A stretch of 64,000 nucleotides of DNA, from NCBI RefSeq assembly GCF_041956535.1, contig NW_027192207.1, positions 529,374 through 593,373 of the forward strand, given 5' to 3'. The position numbers and the translations under genes were made by a program. The notes beneath the pieces were generated by a model. That model was not told the origin of the DNA and did not search any database. It worked only from the letters and a program-made list of their open reading frames with translations. How positions within the stretch are numbered: the stretch's first letter is position 1; every line of letters starts with the position of its first letter. This document shows, one piece after another, positions 40,063-55,329 of the stretch. This stretch comes from Calcarisporiella thermophila CBS 279.70. Lineage: Eukaryota > Fungi > Calcarisporiellomycota.

Positions 40063-41958
40063 ATGGTTAAAGAGATTCTCATTAAAACACAGACAGATGA
40101 TCAAATTCCTATTCATATCCTTCATAATGTATCTGCACAGTCTCAAAGTATGGAATCAGATCTCGCAAGAAGTCGAGGTCCACGCCCACGTCTACTCGCT
40201 GACACACGTCGCCGGAAGATTCCAAAGACACCTTCAAAAAGTACTTCAAAAGCTAACAATTCAAATACGCCAGGTAGAACTCCGAGCACTAAAATGGCTG
40301 CTGCACGTCAAATGTTCGATTCTGCTCTCACTGTGACCGGGAGATCGAAATTTAAGCATAAAGAGGATGCAGAAGCAAATGTAGAGGAAGACTGGAATCA
40401 TTTGAGAAATAAGAAAATCAAAGATCGCGAAGATTCTGTACTTGAGGATGAGGAAGAGGAGAGGGATAAGGAGAATAGACACGATACCGTTGCGGGGAGA
40501 GATCTATATGGGTTTGTCGGGAGAAAGAAGAATAGACTAGAAGAGATGTTAAAGGATTTGGTCGAGTCTGCGAAAACCGAGGAGGGTGTTTCCCCTGTGA
40601 CAACTCCAAGTAGAAGACATAAAATAAACGACAAATTGACATATACCGATCCGGATCGAGTTGCAAAACGGAGACGAATAACGCAGCAAGTTAACAAGTT
40701 AAACAGAATAGAAAGCGAAGAGGAAGACGAAGGAGACGAGGAAGAAAATGAAGTGGACGATGAGGCAAGCGATGGCGAAGAGGATCTTGTAAGAAGAGAG
40801 GAACTCGATGAGCGGATATTCGATTCAGATAACGAGAAGAGCAGTGAAGATGAAGGGAGTACAGGGATCCGTTTAGGCGGTGGGAAAATTCCGATTGCTT
40901 TCGAAGATTCAGCAGGATATGAAAGTTATTTTCGTGATTTACATGGTCGTTCGCTCACATCCAACCGCACACTTTCAAAGCTACCGACTCTAGAGCAGCA
41001 CGAATTTCTCGATCTGATTGCTAAAGCACCAAGAAAACATGCCGAAGAACTGACTATCCTTCGCAACCTCCATAAGATGCAGTTTCAACAATGGTATTTT
41101 GAGCTGAGTTGCGGATTCAATTTGCTTTTTTATGGATATGGTTCAAAACGAAAATTATTACTGGAGTTTGCGAAGCAATACTGCACGGACGGAGTGATGC
41201 TGGTAGTCAATGGTTATTTTCCTACCGTGAGTGCCCGTGATATACTGCGAAAAATTATCGAAGGGGTGGTGAGAAAGGAGGAATATGGGACTTCTATGGG
41301 GGGCTCCTTACAAGAACAAGTTCGTATGCTAAGGGAATTTCTGGCCGATCCAGAACGCGAATTCCGATACCTCTATCTTATTGTACATAATATAGATGGA
41401 GCCGCTCTACGATCTGAGAAAAGCCAACTGATGTTGAGCCAACTAGCAGCAATTCCTGGAGTACGTGTCATTGCTTCAGTTGATCATATTAACGCTGGAT
41501 TGTTATGGGACAGTGTGAAACGGGCGCGGTTTAATTGGATATGGCATGACGCAACAACATATGAGGATTATTTGGCTGAAACGAGTTATGAAGGCTCACT
41601 ACTTATGGTGCGCGGAGAAGAGCTAGGAGTGCGTGGTGCTCGACATGTGCTCATGAGCTTGACAACAAATGCGCGTGGTGTATTCCGCGTTCTGGCCGAG
41701 CATCAGATTGCGTCTGCCAAAGAAGCGGGTAACGGGAGAGAAAACAAATTGCCTCAAAACCAGGCTGTGGCTCAAGATCAACTTTTCCAATGGTGCCGAG
41801 AGCGGTTCTTGGTAAGCACCCAACTTACCTTCGAGACCCAATTGACTGAGTTCCGTGATCACAAGCTAATAATGTTCAAAACGGTTGATGGAGTGCGCAT
41901 GTTATGGATTCCACTAACGGTGCCAATATTAGAGTCAATATTAGAAGGGATAGATTAA
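40063..41958 (+). CDS. ORC2: Origin recognition complex subunit 2, intronless
   Basis: QWYFELSCGFNLLFYGYGSKRKLL, VVNGYFP, IVHNIDG, IASVDHINA, WHDATT and LTEFRDHKL. Confidence 0.96.
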   Translation: MVKEILIKTQTDDQIPIHILHNVSAQSQSMESDLARSRGPRPRLLADTRRRKIPKTPSKSTSKANNSNTPGRTPSTKMAAARQMFDSALTVTGRSKFKHKEDAEANVEEDWNHLRNKKIKDREDSVLEDEEEERDKENRHDTVAGRDLYGFVGRKKNRLEEMLKDLVESAKTEEGVSPVTTPSRRHKINDKLTYTDPDRVAKRRRITQQVNKLNRIESEEEDEGDEEENEVDDEASDGEEDLVRREELDERIFDSDNEKSSEDEGSTGIRLGGGKIPIAFEDSAGYESYFRDLHGRSLTSNRTLSKLPTLEQHEFLDLIAKAPRKHAEELTILRNLHKMQFQQWYFELSCGFNLLFYGYGSKRKLLLEFAKQYCTDGVMLVVNGYFPTVSARDILRKIIEGVVRKEEYGTSMGGSLQEQVRMLREFLADPEREFRYLYLIVHNIDGAALRSEKSQLMLSQLAAIPGVRVIASVDHINAGLLWDSVKRARFNWIWHDATTYEDYLAETSYEGSLLMVRGEELGVRGARHVLMSLTTNARGVFRVLAEHQIASAKEAGNGRENKLPQNQAVAQDQLFQWCRERFLVSTQLTFETQLTEFRDHKLIMFKTVDGVRMLWIPLTVPILESILEGID

Positions 41959-47473: not shown

Positions 47474-48280
47474 CGCAATTCGTTTTAAGGAAGAGATATA
47501 ATACCCAATGCTCACAATGTTTTATAAATTCAATGTTTGATTGTCTTGAGTATTTATGGAATAGTGTAGTAACCAATAGACAATTGCAATTTCAATATCA
47601 CTGAAATAAACACTGCACTTGTTGTAATTTCTAGTTATTGAAGTCTTTTGATGATAACCTATGGATTACTGGTATGAAGCTACTCTTTTTTTGGGGATAA
47701 TACGACTATTTGGATGCGGACCAACTCACTTTCCTAAACCATTGATTCCCTCAATAACCCTAATTCTCCACCATTTTCGGTCCAATCTTGGATGTGTACG
47801 GTTTTTAGCGAAATTTTCATTTGCCATGTTCTCGATCATTTTCGGTTTATTTTTAATTCGATTTAGGGAAAAGGAATTGCACAAGTATTAGCAAAATAAT
47901 AACGGGAGTTTATATTTGAGGAAGGTAGGAAACTTACAAAAAATATATTCCATTAGGTGGGTATTAAAGTTCCGAAAGGAACTTTTTATGACTATTGTTT
48001 CATTTTGCTATTATTGCAAAAGTTTATCGCTACTAAGTAAGCGAAATTACCAGTAGTTGCCTCTACTACCGGGAGAAAAATGTTCGGTACTTTTCCCATT
48101 AACGTTCGGCTAATAATAATGACCCCATGAAAGTAGAAAGTAGCCGTTATTCCAAATAGCTCGTGTAAAGTATAAAAGCTCGTCCTCCCAGATTCCAAAC
48201 TCATTAACATACAATCCATTTACCTTCATTCACTTAAATATACAGTAATCTTTTTCTTATATAACTTCATATAAATTACA

Positions 48281-49261
48281 ATGAAACCCGTTATCTTTGC
48301 TACTCTTGCTCTCATTGGCCTTGCCTCTCTCACTCAGGCAAATCCTATTAGCGTTCCCGTCAAGGAATTGCAGACCACTGAGAAGAAAACTGCTGTCTCG
48401 ACCAATTCGATCAAAAATGTACTGGAGAAGCGGTGGGACTGCAGACGTCACCGTTGTCACCACAGGCACTGCAACCACCCATGCCACCACTACTACGATG
48501 ATGACCACCACGGTGATCTCCAAGATAACGTCGAAGCCTCTGTAGATGACTGGCTCGACAATTCCTTTGACGGCTACAAGCGTGACTTGCAGGCTGTTGA
48601 AGCCACTGGCGTGACCCCTAAGGAAAACGTTTTGGAGAAGCGATGGGACTGCAGACGTCACCGCTGCCACCACAGGCACTGCAATCACCCATGCCACCAC
48701 TACTACTATGACGACCATCACGGTGATCTCCAAGACAACGTCGAAGCCTCTGTAGATGACTGGCTTGACAATTCCTTCGATGGCTACAAGCGTGACTTGC
48801 AGGCTGTCGAAGACACTGGTGTAACCCCTAAGGAAAACGTTTTGGAGAAGCGATGGGATTGCAAACGTCACCGTTGCCACCACAGGCACTGCAATCACCC
48901 ATGCCACCACTACTACGATGACGACCACCACGGCGATCTTCAAGACAACGTCGAAGCCTCTGTAGATGACTGGCTCGACAATTCCTTTGACGGCTACAAG
49001 CGTGATCTGTCGAGCCTCTTCGGGAAAAAGAAGAAGAAGAAGTCTCTCCTCAAGAAGAAGAAGAATAACATCTTCAACGAGAGAACCGCTGAGGATGACG
49101 ACGAAGATATGGAAGATGAGGATATGGAAGTCAAGAAGAAGCAAAAGAAGGGAAAGAAGAAGAACGAGATGAAGGCAATGAATGAGGAGGATGAGGAGGA
49201 TGAGGATCTTCAAGAAGAAGAGTATTTCGATGGTGAGGAAGAGGAAGAGGATGACGAGTGA
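48281..49261 (+). CDS. Secreted Kex2-processed repeat protein (KEP): signal peptide, 3x 48-aa His/Cys-rich core and a block-charged tail
   Basis: Hydrophobic signal peptide MKPVIFATLALIGLASLTQA; three 70-aa units, each core bounded by KR; intronless. Confidence 0.9.
   Translation: MKPVIFATLALIGLASLTQANPISVPVKELQTTEKKTAVSTNSIKNVLEKRWDCRRHRCHHRHCNHPCHHYYDDDHHGDLQDNVEASVDDWLDNSFDGYKRDLQAVEATGVTPKENVLEKRWDCRRHRCHHRHCNHPCHHYYYDDHHGDLQDNVEASVDDWLDNSFDGYKRDLQAVEDTGVTPKENVLEKRWDCKRHRCHHRHCNHPCHHYYDDDHHGDLQDNVEASVDDWLDNSFDGYKRDLSSLFGKKKKKKSLLKKKKNNIFNERTAEDDDEDMEDEDMEVKKKQKKGKKKNEMKAMNEEDEEDEDLQEEEYFDGEEEEEDDE
48418..49003 (+). repeat. Tandem coding repeat, 210-nt period, 3 copies
   Basis: The TGGGA(C/T)TGC core start recurs at 48434, 48644 and 48854; differences between copies are mostly synonymous. 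Confidence 0.95.
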
Positions 49262-49489: not shown

Positions 49490-49850
49490 TCAGAAAGATT
49501 CAGGTACTCCAACACTTGATCTATATTTTCGGCCTTTCTCTATCCATTCATAATTATACGGCATTCCAAGGCGAAGCATTGCGTTTTCTCCAATACGTTT
49601 CAGTACATTTCGTCTAAAGAATAGAGGTTGGAAAATACATGTAACAATCTAAGAGAAAGATCACTTACGCATTTTCCGCGAGGCCGTCAAGATATAAATG
49701 CTGTCCCTGTATATCCACGTCGCTTTCAACCCTGCGCATTTTTTGGTGTGTATTTGTGTAAAGGTTTATATCACCGTTCCCATTTACAGGGATGCCATTG
49801 CAAAAGGTAGGCAAGACTATAATTGACACTACAATGACGAGGCACTTCAT
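49490..49850 (-). CDS. Small secreted prepropeptide (101 aa, 2 exons; intron 49614-49668)
   Basis: Signal peptide MKCLVIVVSIIVLPTFCNG. A canonical GTAAGT...TTTAG 55-nt intron restores an open frame ...GLAENARNVLKRIGENAMLRLGMPYNYEWIEKGRKYRSSVGVPESF*. Confidence 0.6.
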
Positions 49851-51564: not shown

Positions 51565-54500
51565 ATGGCAACATCTTTTTCTCCTACTTATTCGACCGCT
51601 TACTTGGTTGGTATGCAGGCTATCTATAAATGGCCAGGACAAAATACAGGCGATCTGATTTTCGATGCCGGTAAATTTTAACGTAGAAATTATTGCTAAC
51701 GCCATCGCTAATGCATCTTCTGTTTAATTTCGCTTCCAAGGGGATATAATTGATGTTTTCGATACTTGTAAGAAATTTTGGTTGATTAATCGCTCCCATT
51801 ATCACTGTGATTAATATTCTATGTTAAAAATAGCTGATCCAATATGGTGGAAAGGGATTTTGAGAAATTCGGGGGCGATTGGCACATTTCCAGCAAATTA
51901 TGTTACCACAGTGTAAATGGAATAACAATAATTTTAATATGTCAAGTTTATCTCACTCTTTGTCTTCATTTTATTAGAGAGCAGGGGAGATGGATACCAC
52001 TCGCTCACTCCGCCCACTCGCTTAACATACCTCCTTTGCATGCTAACATCGTCCTTCCTTCCTCAACACCTTTCATGGTGCCTACCTCTCTTGAACATTC
52101 TCAGGCAATAGGAGCAGCGGTAGGAAGTACCGGAAATAATTCCGATTCTGGTTACGGCACGGATCCTTTGTCGTGGTATGCTCTTGCAGCGCGCTCCACC
52201 AGCCCCGCCATGTTTAGTAGTGTCTCTATTTCTCCTACCCCTTCCACCACACAAAGATTATCACCCTCTCCGCGTCGTAAACCAGTTGATCGGTCCCTAC
52301 GGTCCACTCCTAAAACAGAGAAAGAATTAGATGCGAATTATCGAGTATCTCGGGTTCCCGTCTCCAGAACATTAGCTAAGCTGGTACAAGGCAAGTTTCA
52401 AAAGATAGAGCAACTCAAACATCAAGTATCGGCACGGAAAAAGAGTGCAGAGGACAATGAGTTGGTGAATAGCGAGCGTTCCTTGAGTCCAAAAGTAGGT
52501 GCAAAGGATAAAGCTCGACCTGTCTCAAACCCACCGGCTGTTGCATTAAAAGGCGTATTGAAGAAAACGTTGCCACTCCCAACGAATGTTGAGACGTTGC
52601 CTGTGGGTTCCTTTGAAAATGAAGAGAAGAAAATGTATATCGAGAAGCGCGCAAAGAAAAGTCCCAAAGCAAAAACGAAGACGAAGAAAAAGGACCAAAC
52701 CTCCAACTATCAACGTAGGAGAGCGTATAGTGTTTGCGAGGACCAGGCAAAGGAGGCCAACCCATATGCAAACCAAAATCTGTATCGTCTTTCTGTTCAA
52801 GAGTTACATTCAGAGGATATACTTCAAGAAGGGACTCATTCAATTGACTATCGAGATGATAGCGAGGATGAAGAAAGTGATCATGCAGATGGAGTTGAAT
52901 GGGAGAGCGCTATTGAGACAGCCATAAATACGGCACATCCGCACGATTTTGCCCAGAAATTATCCCATGTTTCAAGGCTTGAACAACGGACCAAATCGTC
53001 GGCTTTACGTGCAAAATCTGTGCCTCGTGCGCAAATTATAGATGACTCACCAAACAGGGAAGATACTGATGGTGTACGCTCACACCGTAAGCCAACTAGA
53101 ACACGCAAAGTTACTCCTGGGAACCGTCTCCTACACTCTCGCTCCGAAAGCAATGTAGCCGAAAAGTACTATGCCGAAACCAGAAAACTTAATGAGGATA
53201 GAGGTACGTTTCTTTTTTTCTAATTATCAATAAAATAACCCTGGCAAAGCAGCTACTGATTCTTCATTTCTTTGACTATATAGGATCGGCAATGACTCTA
53301 TCAGCATCCACAGCATCCCCTCTTTCTTCTCTCTCTTCAGCAAGTAGACATTCGAGCCGACGAAGTAATTCTAACGGGCTTCTACCCAATCTCCTGGGAC
53401 GCAATAGTGCCGTGATAGCTCCAGATGATAGCACAAGTAGTATTGCTACTCCTTCTTCCACCTCGTGTTCAGATCCTGATTGCAGAGATGAGAAGGCTCT
53501 TCGAAGACGCTCTACTGGAGGACTTAGCCATCAATTTAAAAAGATCTTCAATCCTACAAAAGCCCTACACGACGAAGCTCAACAACAGCAGCGAGCGGAG
53601 GCAAAAGTACGCAGCGTGCTTCGGGCTCTCTCTCCGGATCCAGAAAGTATTGCCGAGTGGCGCACAAATTTCAACCCTTTTGCGGTGCTGGAAAATTCAA
53701 TTGATATTATGGAACCGGGAAGTTGCTTGCAAATAAGGGGGGTCGATTTTACTCAAATTGACATATACGCGCGGAATATAAAACATCGTGCCTCGCTTCT
53801 AACCCCCGAAGTACTGGCGTGCAAATATCTTGTTCGGCCATATCGAAGAGATATCGAAAAGGCCCGGGTGCTTTTCACTTGGGTCGCCGAAAATATTCGG
53901 TATGATGACTCTGCTGAGGTGGAGGATGCGGCCTCAGAGAAGATTCCCACCAAACAAGCAGGAAAAGGAGGGCTGAAAAAACATTCTTCTATGGTACCCT
54001 ATTCTGAACGAGCTGACGCGGTATTGCAACGCAGAACGAGTCGTGAAGAAGGCTATGCTCGACTGTTCCATGCGTTAGCATTGGCTGTTGGGTTAGAGGA
54101 TCCGACCATTGTGCATGGGCATCGTAAACTTGAGCCAGGGGATCTCATAGAAGAAGACTGTGTACCTGCGATCGAGCATTATTGGAATGCAGGCAAGTAT
54201 ATATTTCACCCCAAGGAGTGGACACCGCATCATTATCCATTAATTAACGCTTCTGCCACTTTTTACATTTACCTGTACAGTGAAAATCGATGGTGAATAT
54301 CGGTTCATCGACTGCGCACTCGCTTCCCCAACACACCCATGTAACCGCAGAAAGAGTGAACTTGAGAATTACTATTTTCTCACTCGACCCTCGGGCCTCA
54401 TTTATACGCATTTTGCTTCCATGCCTGATCACCAATTCCTTGATCCACCGGTTGCTCCGGAAGTATTTTCAACCCTTCCGTATGTCACGCCTGCATTTTT

Positions 54501-55329
54501 CCGCTGCGGGTTGGAGGTGCTCGATTTTGAGCAGACATCGGTGGCATTGAAGGATGATGAGATATGCCATTTGAATATTGGATTACCAGAAATCGGAAAG
54601 GACGAAGTCGTGGACGTTTGGGCAGAGGTAGTGGTAGCACGATACGAATCGCAGCAGGACCAAGCGAGTCAAAATGGTGTTAAGGATGGAAAGGCTACGG
54701 TGCGCAAACGAGCGCTCTCTCAGTACCTGTACGTGATGGACCGGCGAGTGTGTAAAATTAAGGCCGTAATGCCAAATGCGAATGAACTGGGCCTCGTGAA
54801 AGTGTATACTGTGAAACGAAAACTGGGTGCTGCCTCTGACTCTTCCTCTAGCAGCACCTCTAGCAATAATATTACCTCCTTATTGCACAAGAACCAACAT
54901 TGGCACCACCATGGCAAACACACACATCATCCTTATCCGGGAGGAGAGCTCGCTCTGGTACTACAGATCTCGCATCGAGGAGAGCTTCAACCATTCAATT
55001 TCTTTATCCAGCATCGGCCGGCGGCGGATGATTTTTATGTGCGAGAGCCTGTGTGTCGCCGGCTCTATGCATTCCAACCCTATCGCTTCCATGTCGTGTC
55101 TAATGTGACACGGCATCGAAAGTTACAGCTGCGATCGCCCAACGGGAAAATGCACAAGTTTATCTATTTCCCTCAGGAATTTGCCTATGAGCTAGAGATA
55201 TCCTTGCAGCAACTAGGTGCGTGGGACCTGGTGTGTGCCCCCGATCCTCTTTCAGCGACTGGATCTGGAGGGGGTGTGAAAGTAAAGGGAGGAGTAGTAG
55301 TGTTAGCAACGTGGATTTGTGAGGTGTGA
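51565..55329 (+). CDS. CYK3: Cytokinesis protein Cyk3 (N-terminal SH3 + transglutaminase-like domain), multi-exon
   Basis: Spliced SH3 domain AIYKWPGQNTGDLIFDAGDIIDVFDTSDPIWWKG...GTFPANYV; TGase-like KARVLFTWVAENI, EGYARLF, HYWNA|VKIDGEYRFID; YFLTRP...YTHF. Confidence 0.88.

Follow-up and report, generated by a model that had tools for sequence, protein, structure and literature searches.

The gene at 48281-49261 on the forward strand of the window analysed here, the whole 64,000-nucleotide stretch of DNA from the thermophilic soil fungus Calcarisporiella thermophila, is a real coding gene, and it probably specifies a secreted precursor of the Kex2-processed repeat protein (KEP) type, in which three near-identical units each carry a 48-residue core dense in His and Cys. 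We infer secretion, cleavage, the boundaries of the released peptides and metal binding from features of the sequence. The more complete reading, in which this is a single-copy, lineage-restricted KEP gene of C. thermophila with metal binding as the preferred function of its product, appears to us evenly balanced between right and wrong. KEPs are a large, for the most part uncharacterised source of peptides secreted by fungi, and those with a known function from early-diverging fungi are almost nil; the early-diverging origin given in a preliminary description of this DNA agrees with the placement of C. thermophila in Calcarisporiellomycota. The species was confirmed through Hsp104: the open frame of this protein in the genome is nearly identical to C. 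thermophila Hsp104 (PDB 6d00), at 1338 bits over 612 residues, and the next homologue, from outside Calcarisporiella, reaches 732 bits. For this KEP, the evidence of selection on the peptide is unusually clear, and the composition suggests a specific chemistry.

Gene Structure and Precursor Layout

The coding sequence is complete and intron-less (326 aa plus the stop codon), and the sole database entry, P0001, is an identical 326-aa protein from a public gene model. The following features were read along it:

48172..48179, forward strand: TATA box TATAAAAG, 109 bp 5' of the ATG, read from the DNA
48281..48340, forward strand: signal peptide, residues 1-20, predicted from sequence features to be cut after T-Q-A
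48341..48433, forward strand: pro-region, residues 21-51, basic, finishing NVLEKR
48434..48577, forward strand: core 1, residues 52-99, with an internal RR at residues 55-56
48578..48643, forward strand: KR and spacer 1 (residues 100-121), finishing LEKR
48644..48787, forward strand: core 2, residues 122-169, the YYYDD variant
48788..48853, forward strand: KR and spacer 2 (residues 170-191), finishing LEKR
48854..48997, forward strand: core 3, residues 192-239, in which the internal dibasic site is KR
48998..49258, forward strand: last KR and the 85-residue tail (tail 49004-49258)

The ATG has A at position -3. The predicted signal peptide consists of MK, a 15-residue hydrophobic stretch and T-Q-A before N, with a GRAVY of 1.44, as judged by eye and by the (-3,-1) rule. 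At 48423-49005, Tandem Repeats Finder detected a repeat far beyond chance, with 2.8 copies of a 210-nt period that are free of indels and match at 93%, and translation resolved it into three 70-aa units whose first residues are 52, 122 and 192. Each unit comprises the 48-aa core (reference P0001:52-99), KR, and an 18-aa acidic spacer finishing LEKR, and the end of the pro-region is a diverged copy of the spacer. The ORF, the signal peptide features, the three near-identical units and the KR and LEKR sites reported in the preliminary description were thus borne out by translation and by Tandem Repeats Finder, as were its variants YYDDD/YYYDD and CRR/CKR, beyond which the only difference between units is an A/D exchange in the spacer. 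In the tail, poly-Lys alternates with blocks of Asp and Glu (net charge about -14 at pH 6.5), and neither a hydrophobic GPI-type end nor an ER-retention motif was found there; the entire 326-aa protein is devoid of N-glycosylation sequons.

Selection on the Peptide Sequence

The differences between the units show selection on the peptide sequence. Among the variable columns, 16 of 20 fall at codon position 3 and the other four elsewhere, dS between units is 0.43-0.62 against a dN of 0.007-0.014, and any two units differ by only 1-2 amino acids. Because dS is high and dN near nil, the duplications are considered old and the peptide sequence kept by selection. Summed over the unit pairs, pN/pS is 0.024 in the frame of the ORF; of the five alternative frames, four give 2.0-5.5 and the last gives 0.11 but holds a stop. 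For a single unit pair, finding at most one non-synonymous change among 14 has a binomial P of about 2e-9. A 318-aa antisense ORF (48257-49213, reverse strand) was rejected as a gene, since its pN/pS of 2.1 between units marks it as a by-product of the stop-free repeat.

Codon use in the 326-aa ORF is biased: GC3 is 0.62, and His is encoded by CAC at 26 of 27 positions, Cys by TGC at 11 of 12 and Lys by AAG at 28 of 33. It is similar to that of GAPDH and Hsp104 in the same genome, with a GC3 of 0.75 and 0.70, and unlike that of its neighbours: in the adjacent ORC2 (40063-41958) and Cyk3 (53292-55329) genes it is 0.39, with CAT and GAT preferred. As GC3 thus changes from 0.62 to 0.39 within 15 kb, the bias is specific to the gene and not regional, and it may be taken as an indirect sign that the repeat gene is appreciably expressed. 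The protein was found in one contig, and no transcript-derived contig bearing it was detected.

Predicted Cleavage Sites and Kexins

Nine dibasic sites are present in the precursor, namely three LEKR followed by W, three YKR followed by D, and three internal C(R/K)R followed by H, one in each core. The internal site reads C-R-R before H in units 1 and 2 and C-K-R before H in unit 3, where the substitution leaves the site dibasic and makes it a canonical KR. At the P4 position, Leu is found in the LEKR sites, Gly in the YKR sites and Asp in the C(R/K)R sites. Kex2 prefers Leu at P4, Lys or Arg at P2, and Arg at P1 (10.1101/2020.05.27.120113); the three LEKR sites fit this preference, and the YKR sites are canonical dibasic sites that lack the preferred P4 residue. 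All nine sites have been kept across units with a synonymous divergence of 0.4-0.6. No Ste13 signature follows KR, which is succeeded by WD or DL. NVLEKR was also considered as a recurrent processing site in the genome and rejected, with 3 further DNA matches against 4 in a reversed control.

The proprotein-convertase P domain (P_proprotein) was detected at six loci of the genome with 76-104 bits, and at all six the kexin catalytic-serine motif HGGTSAAAP lies directly upstream in the same open frame; kexin-type proteases are therefore present, and proprotein convertases appear to be expanded in C. thermophila. Four of these kexin-like loci are arranged as two convergent adjoining pairs, at C5:1110032-1112179 (L011/L012) and at C7:757755-759762 (L013/L015); the remaining two are L014 and L016, and the match at L016 holds two stops.

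These features are consistent with a pathway in which the signal peptide would carry the precursor into the ER, Golgi kexins would cleave on the C-terminal side of each of the three optimal LEKR motifs and probably also of the three YKR motifs, and a Kex1-type carboxypeptidase would trim the basic residues. The predicted products are three copies of a peptide of ~5.9 kDa, three short acidic spacer or pro-peptides, and the charged tail. If the internal C(R/K)R site were cut as well, each core may be shortened to a 43-aa peptide starting with His, with the release of a tripeptide, and if cutting took place at the LEKR sites alone, a 68-mer would result.

Composition, Charge, and Structure of the Core Peptide

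The core contains 4 Cys (C-x4-C-x4-C-x3-C), 9 His, 4 Arg, 10 Asp, 3 Tyr and 2 Trp. Its N-terminal half is rich in His, Cys and Arg, such that 11 of the 17 positions from core residue 3 to 19 are Cys or His (4 Cys and 7 His), and its C-terminal half is rich in Asp and also carries Trp, Leu and Phe. All nine His had been assigned to the cationic N-half in the preliminary description; this holds for seven of them, and the other two are sited in the acidic half. The computed net charge of the N-half is +10 at pH 4.5 and +3 at pH 7.5, that of the C-half is -6 and -10, and that of the whole 48-mer is +4 and -7, respectively, with a pI of about 5.5. The predicted 48-mer (computed mass about 5930 Da when reduced) is zwitterionic, switches its charge strongly with pH, and contains a dense cluster of Cys and His. 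The earlier suggestion of a histatin-like peptide does not agree with these values: because its computed net charge is acidic, the 48-mer cannot be classed at neutral pH with cations of the histatin type. With a GRAVY of -1.6, it is very hydrophilic. AF2 predicted no secondary structure for a single core (pLDDT 56), and the ESM Atlas model of the whole protein has a pLDDT of 0.38. The acidic half of the core and the spacer, which both begin with DLQ, were compared as possible old duplicates; their alignment score of 17 is matched by 13% of shuffles, and the candidate was rejected.

Search for Relatives

Both a full-length search of 5.8 billion clusters and an exhaustive phmmer search of 1.84 billion representative proteins matched the protein itself and nothing else. 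A mimic with a single unit (residues 1-121) gave zero matches at E <= 10, as did the core against PDB sequences at the same threshold, and Pfam at E <= 10 returned only rows at chance level, nothing near the cut-offs. In JGI metagenome contigs, none of 104 pattern matches was confirmed. In the ESM Atlas, shuffled proteins attain higher feature scores than the 0.79 and 0.77 obtained for this protein, and the structure rows carry no meaning at a model pLDDT of 0.38. As a diverged lone core of 48 residues is hard to detect at the database sizes searched, "no detectable relative" is the accurate wording.

In its own genome the repeat gene appears to be single copy, the sole other match in a protein search being a weak one to the low-complexity tail on contig C31 (L002, E 0.12). 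Matches to the back-translated motif C-H-H-x-H-C at six other places were considered as paralogues, and none is an established one; the five that were translated are stop-filled, and the sixth lies on contig C23. The search for homologues and paralogues that had been proposed beforehand thus demonstrated neither, and its expectation that no characterised family would be matched was upheld in clusters, representative proteins, PDB, Pfam and metagenomes, which were blank beyond the protein itself. In particular, no homology to known metal-binding families (metallothioneins, Pra1/Zps1 and histatins) was detectable by Pfam, by PDB at E <= 10 or by phmmer, and our literature search on His-rich Kex2-derived or secreted fungal metal peptides found no precedent.

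Comparison with Known Systems

KEPs have been defined by an ER signal peptide and at least three near-identical repeats separated by KR or RR (Le Marquer et al., 2019, PMC6339444; Umemura, 2020, PMC7329392). The Calcarisporiella protein has an N-terminal ER signal peptide (by inspection), three near-identical tandem units of 70 aa, and Kex2 sites between them, with LEKR before and YKR after each core, and kexin-like proteases are encoded at six loci or more in the organism; together with the pro-region, these are features that it shares with catalogued KEPs (at least three tandem units, KR/RR sites and kexin genes). About nine KEPs are found per Mucoromycota strain, and the size classes of the peptides include 25-50 aa and >51 aa, the larger ones occurring in Mucoromycota and Chytridiomycota (Le Marquer et al., 2019, PMC6339444; Umemura, 2020, PMC7329392). 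The length of the core, which had been put forward as a distinguishing mark, was therefore overstated, given these classes and the 37-aa peptides of Rep1 (see below). Di-His motifs and Tyr beside Asp are recurrent in KEPs (Umemura, 2020, PMC7329392). Moreover, most KEP types are unique at the genus level and 2560 of 7878 KEPs stand alone without homologues (PMC6339444; PMC7329392), and the Calcarisporiella precursor resembles this third of the catalogue in having none. It differs from other KEPs in its core, which combines an unusually high density of His and Cys with a poly-Asp half, in the lack of a STE13 signature, and in the long Lys/acid tail after the last unit. As Calcarisporiella is absent from the main text and the text supplements of both surveys (PMC6339444; PMC7329392), the protein seems to be uncatalogued. 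The predicted product is a new stand-alone KEP of a known class, with a core sequence that is new and chemically striking.

Rep1 of Ustilago maydis is a KEP that yields 37-aa wall peptides (PMC6339444). The two precursors have in common many copies of a medium-sized, unmodified extracellular peptide (37 aa in Rep1), which in Calcarisporiella is predicted from the sequence. There is no sequence similarity between them, and the Rep1 peptides are surface-active and amphipathic, whereas a high charge and many His and Cys residues characterise the Calcarisporiella core.

The precursor also shares with the alpha-factor precursor of Saccharomyces (MFalpha1) the order of signal peptide, pro-region and KR-flanked repeats, and the LEKR site closely resembles the junction of the alpha-factor leader. 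In contrast, alpha-factor is 13 aa long and is accompanied by EA/DA dipeptides for Ste13, and the Calcarisporiella core has 48 aa and no such dipeptides. Similarly, alpha-type pheromones are marked by repeats of 9-24 aa and by the Ste13 signature XA or XP after KR, and neither was seen in the precursor, with its 48-aa cores and with WD or DL after KR.

Histatins, Helicobacter Hpn and the fungal zincophore Pra1/Zps1 resemble the Calcarisporiella core in composition only, through clustered His, to which the core adds Cys; in these proteins the clustered His binds Zn, Cu or Ni. Metal binding by histatins appears in PMC12787115. No sequence relationship to the core was found with Pfam, phmmer or PDB. 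Other differences are the cationic character of histatins, in which Cys is absent, the cytoplasmic location of Hpn, and the size and folded state of Pra1 (about 300 aa); none of these proteins originates from a Kex2 repeat precursor.

Possible Functions of the Predicted Peptide

Clusters of Cys and His bind Zn, Cu and Ni as a matter of general coordination chemistry, and for this reason we take metal binding as the likeliest function of the core peptide. We propose that the Cys/His cluster may bind extracellular soft or borderline metals (Zn, Cu, Ni) for scavenging or buffering, and that the charge of the peptide would switch strongly between pH 4.5 and 7.5. That metal binding is its main function has, in our estimate, somewhat less than an even chance. 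The narrower proposal, that the three cores are copies of a Kex2-amplified ribosomal metallophore, an extracellular peptide that scavenges or detoxifies Zn, Cu or Ni, is possible but doubtful; such a metallophore might pair the Cys/His cluster with the His that cutting at the internal RR/KR site would leave at the N-terminus. Several observations weigh against metal binding. Under the oxidising conditions of the secretory pathway, the four Cys may do no more than pair as two disulfides, the genes beside the repeat gene are not metal-related, and no fold was predicted (AF2 pLDDT 56; ESM Atlas pLDDT 0.38). As no relatives were detected, there is also no pattern of conservation to point at the ligand residues. 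To our knowledge, the metal scavengers described in fungi are small-molecule siderophores and the folded zincophore Pra1, and peptides derived from KEPs are not among them. If metal binding is true, the gene would represent a gene-encoded, copy-amplified peptide route to metal acquisition or tolerance in fungi, and it would provide a metal-binding peptide of about 5.9 kDa derived from a thermophile. If the peptide binds no metal, it would be one more orphan KEP, the ordinary outcome for this class.

Other readings of the same precursor have to be weighed against metal binding. The released peptides may be structural components of the wall or surface like those of Ustilago Rep1, with the charged halves and the Lys/acid tail binding wall polymers (chitosan, polyanions) or, alternatively, with cross-linking through Tyr, His or Cys. 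Rep1, itself a KEP giving 37-aa wall peptides, is a precedent for such a role, and KEPs of stress-tolerant fungi have been suggested to act as structural components (Le Marquer et al., 2019, PMC6339444); the block-zwitterionic layout of charge in core and tail and the YY(Y) motif of the core would also suit it. However, a GRAVY of -1.6 is accompanied by none of the amphipathic or amyloid-prone character of repellents, and phmmer matched neither Rep1 nor any protein but the query itself, so that we consider a wall peptide rather unlikely. An antimicrobial or signalling peptide switched by pH or metal, in which an N-half of ~+10 at acid pH would act on the membranes of competitors or on a receptor and the acidic half would serve as its neutraliser, is distinctly unlikely. 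Between pH 4.5 and 7.5 the computed charge falls from +10 to +3 in the N-half and from +4 to -7 in the core as a whole, which speaks for such a switch, and both pheromones and the toxin candidalysin are counted among KEPs (PMC6339444). Of the ESM feature clusters, the nearest is "Pheromone 1", at a score of 0.77 that is chance level. Against this, there is no cleavage site between the halves of the core, whose net charge is negative at neutral pH and whose length exceeds the 9-24 aa of the pheromone class; it lacks a STE13 signature, and no receptor or mating context is visible.

It is also conceivable that the precursor is secreted but incompletely cut, either remaining an intact repeat protein or giving 68-aa units through cuts at LEKR only. 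The preferred Leu at P4 occurs at the LEKR sites only (Gly at YKR, Asp at C(R/K)R), and the spacers, on the few changes there are, appear as conserved as the cores. Yet KR is the canonical Kex2 dipeptide and the nine sites have been kept despite a synonymous divergence of 0.4-0.6, which makes incomplete cutting very unlikely. Finally, the Tyr run beside Asp (YYDDD), a combination frequent among KEP types (Umemura, 2020, PMC7329392), would fit a precursor of a ustiloxin/dikaritin-type RiPP, made by cyclising a short stretch of the unit that contains Tyr. We regard this as extremely improbable: it is the entire 70-aa unit that is conserved, not a short core alone, and no family of tailoring-type enzymes was matched by the ORFs examined nearby. 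The preliminary description had seen no UstYa/DUF3328 gene, and the same was found genome-wide with the PF11807 HMM, which gave no match, in a search whose control genomes were prokaryotic, with no eukaryotic positive control, and whose sensitivity is unproven.

Neighboring Genes

The neighbours of the repeat gene encode a kinase, a coiled-coil protein, a small prepropeptide in convergent orientation, a disordered protein and Cyk3. The small convergent gene (49490-49850, reverse strand), whose end lies about 230 bp from the stop codon of the repeat gene, was read exon by exon. Exon 1 (49850-49669) has a signal-peptide-like start, the intron (49668-49614) is 55 nt long and of the form GTAAGT...AG, and exon 2 (49613-49490) opens on an NVLKR dibasic site, after which it encodes a peptide of ~34 aa.
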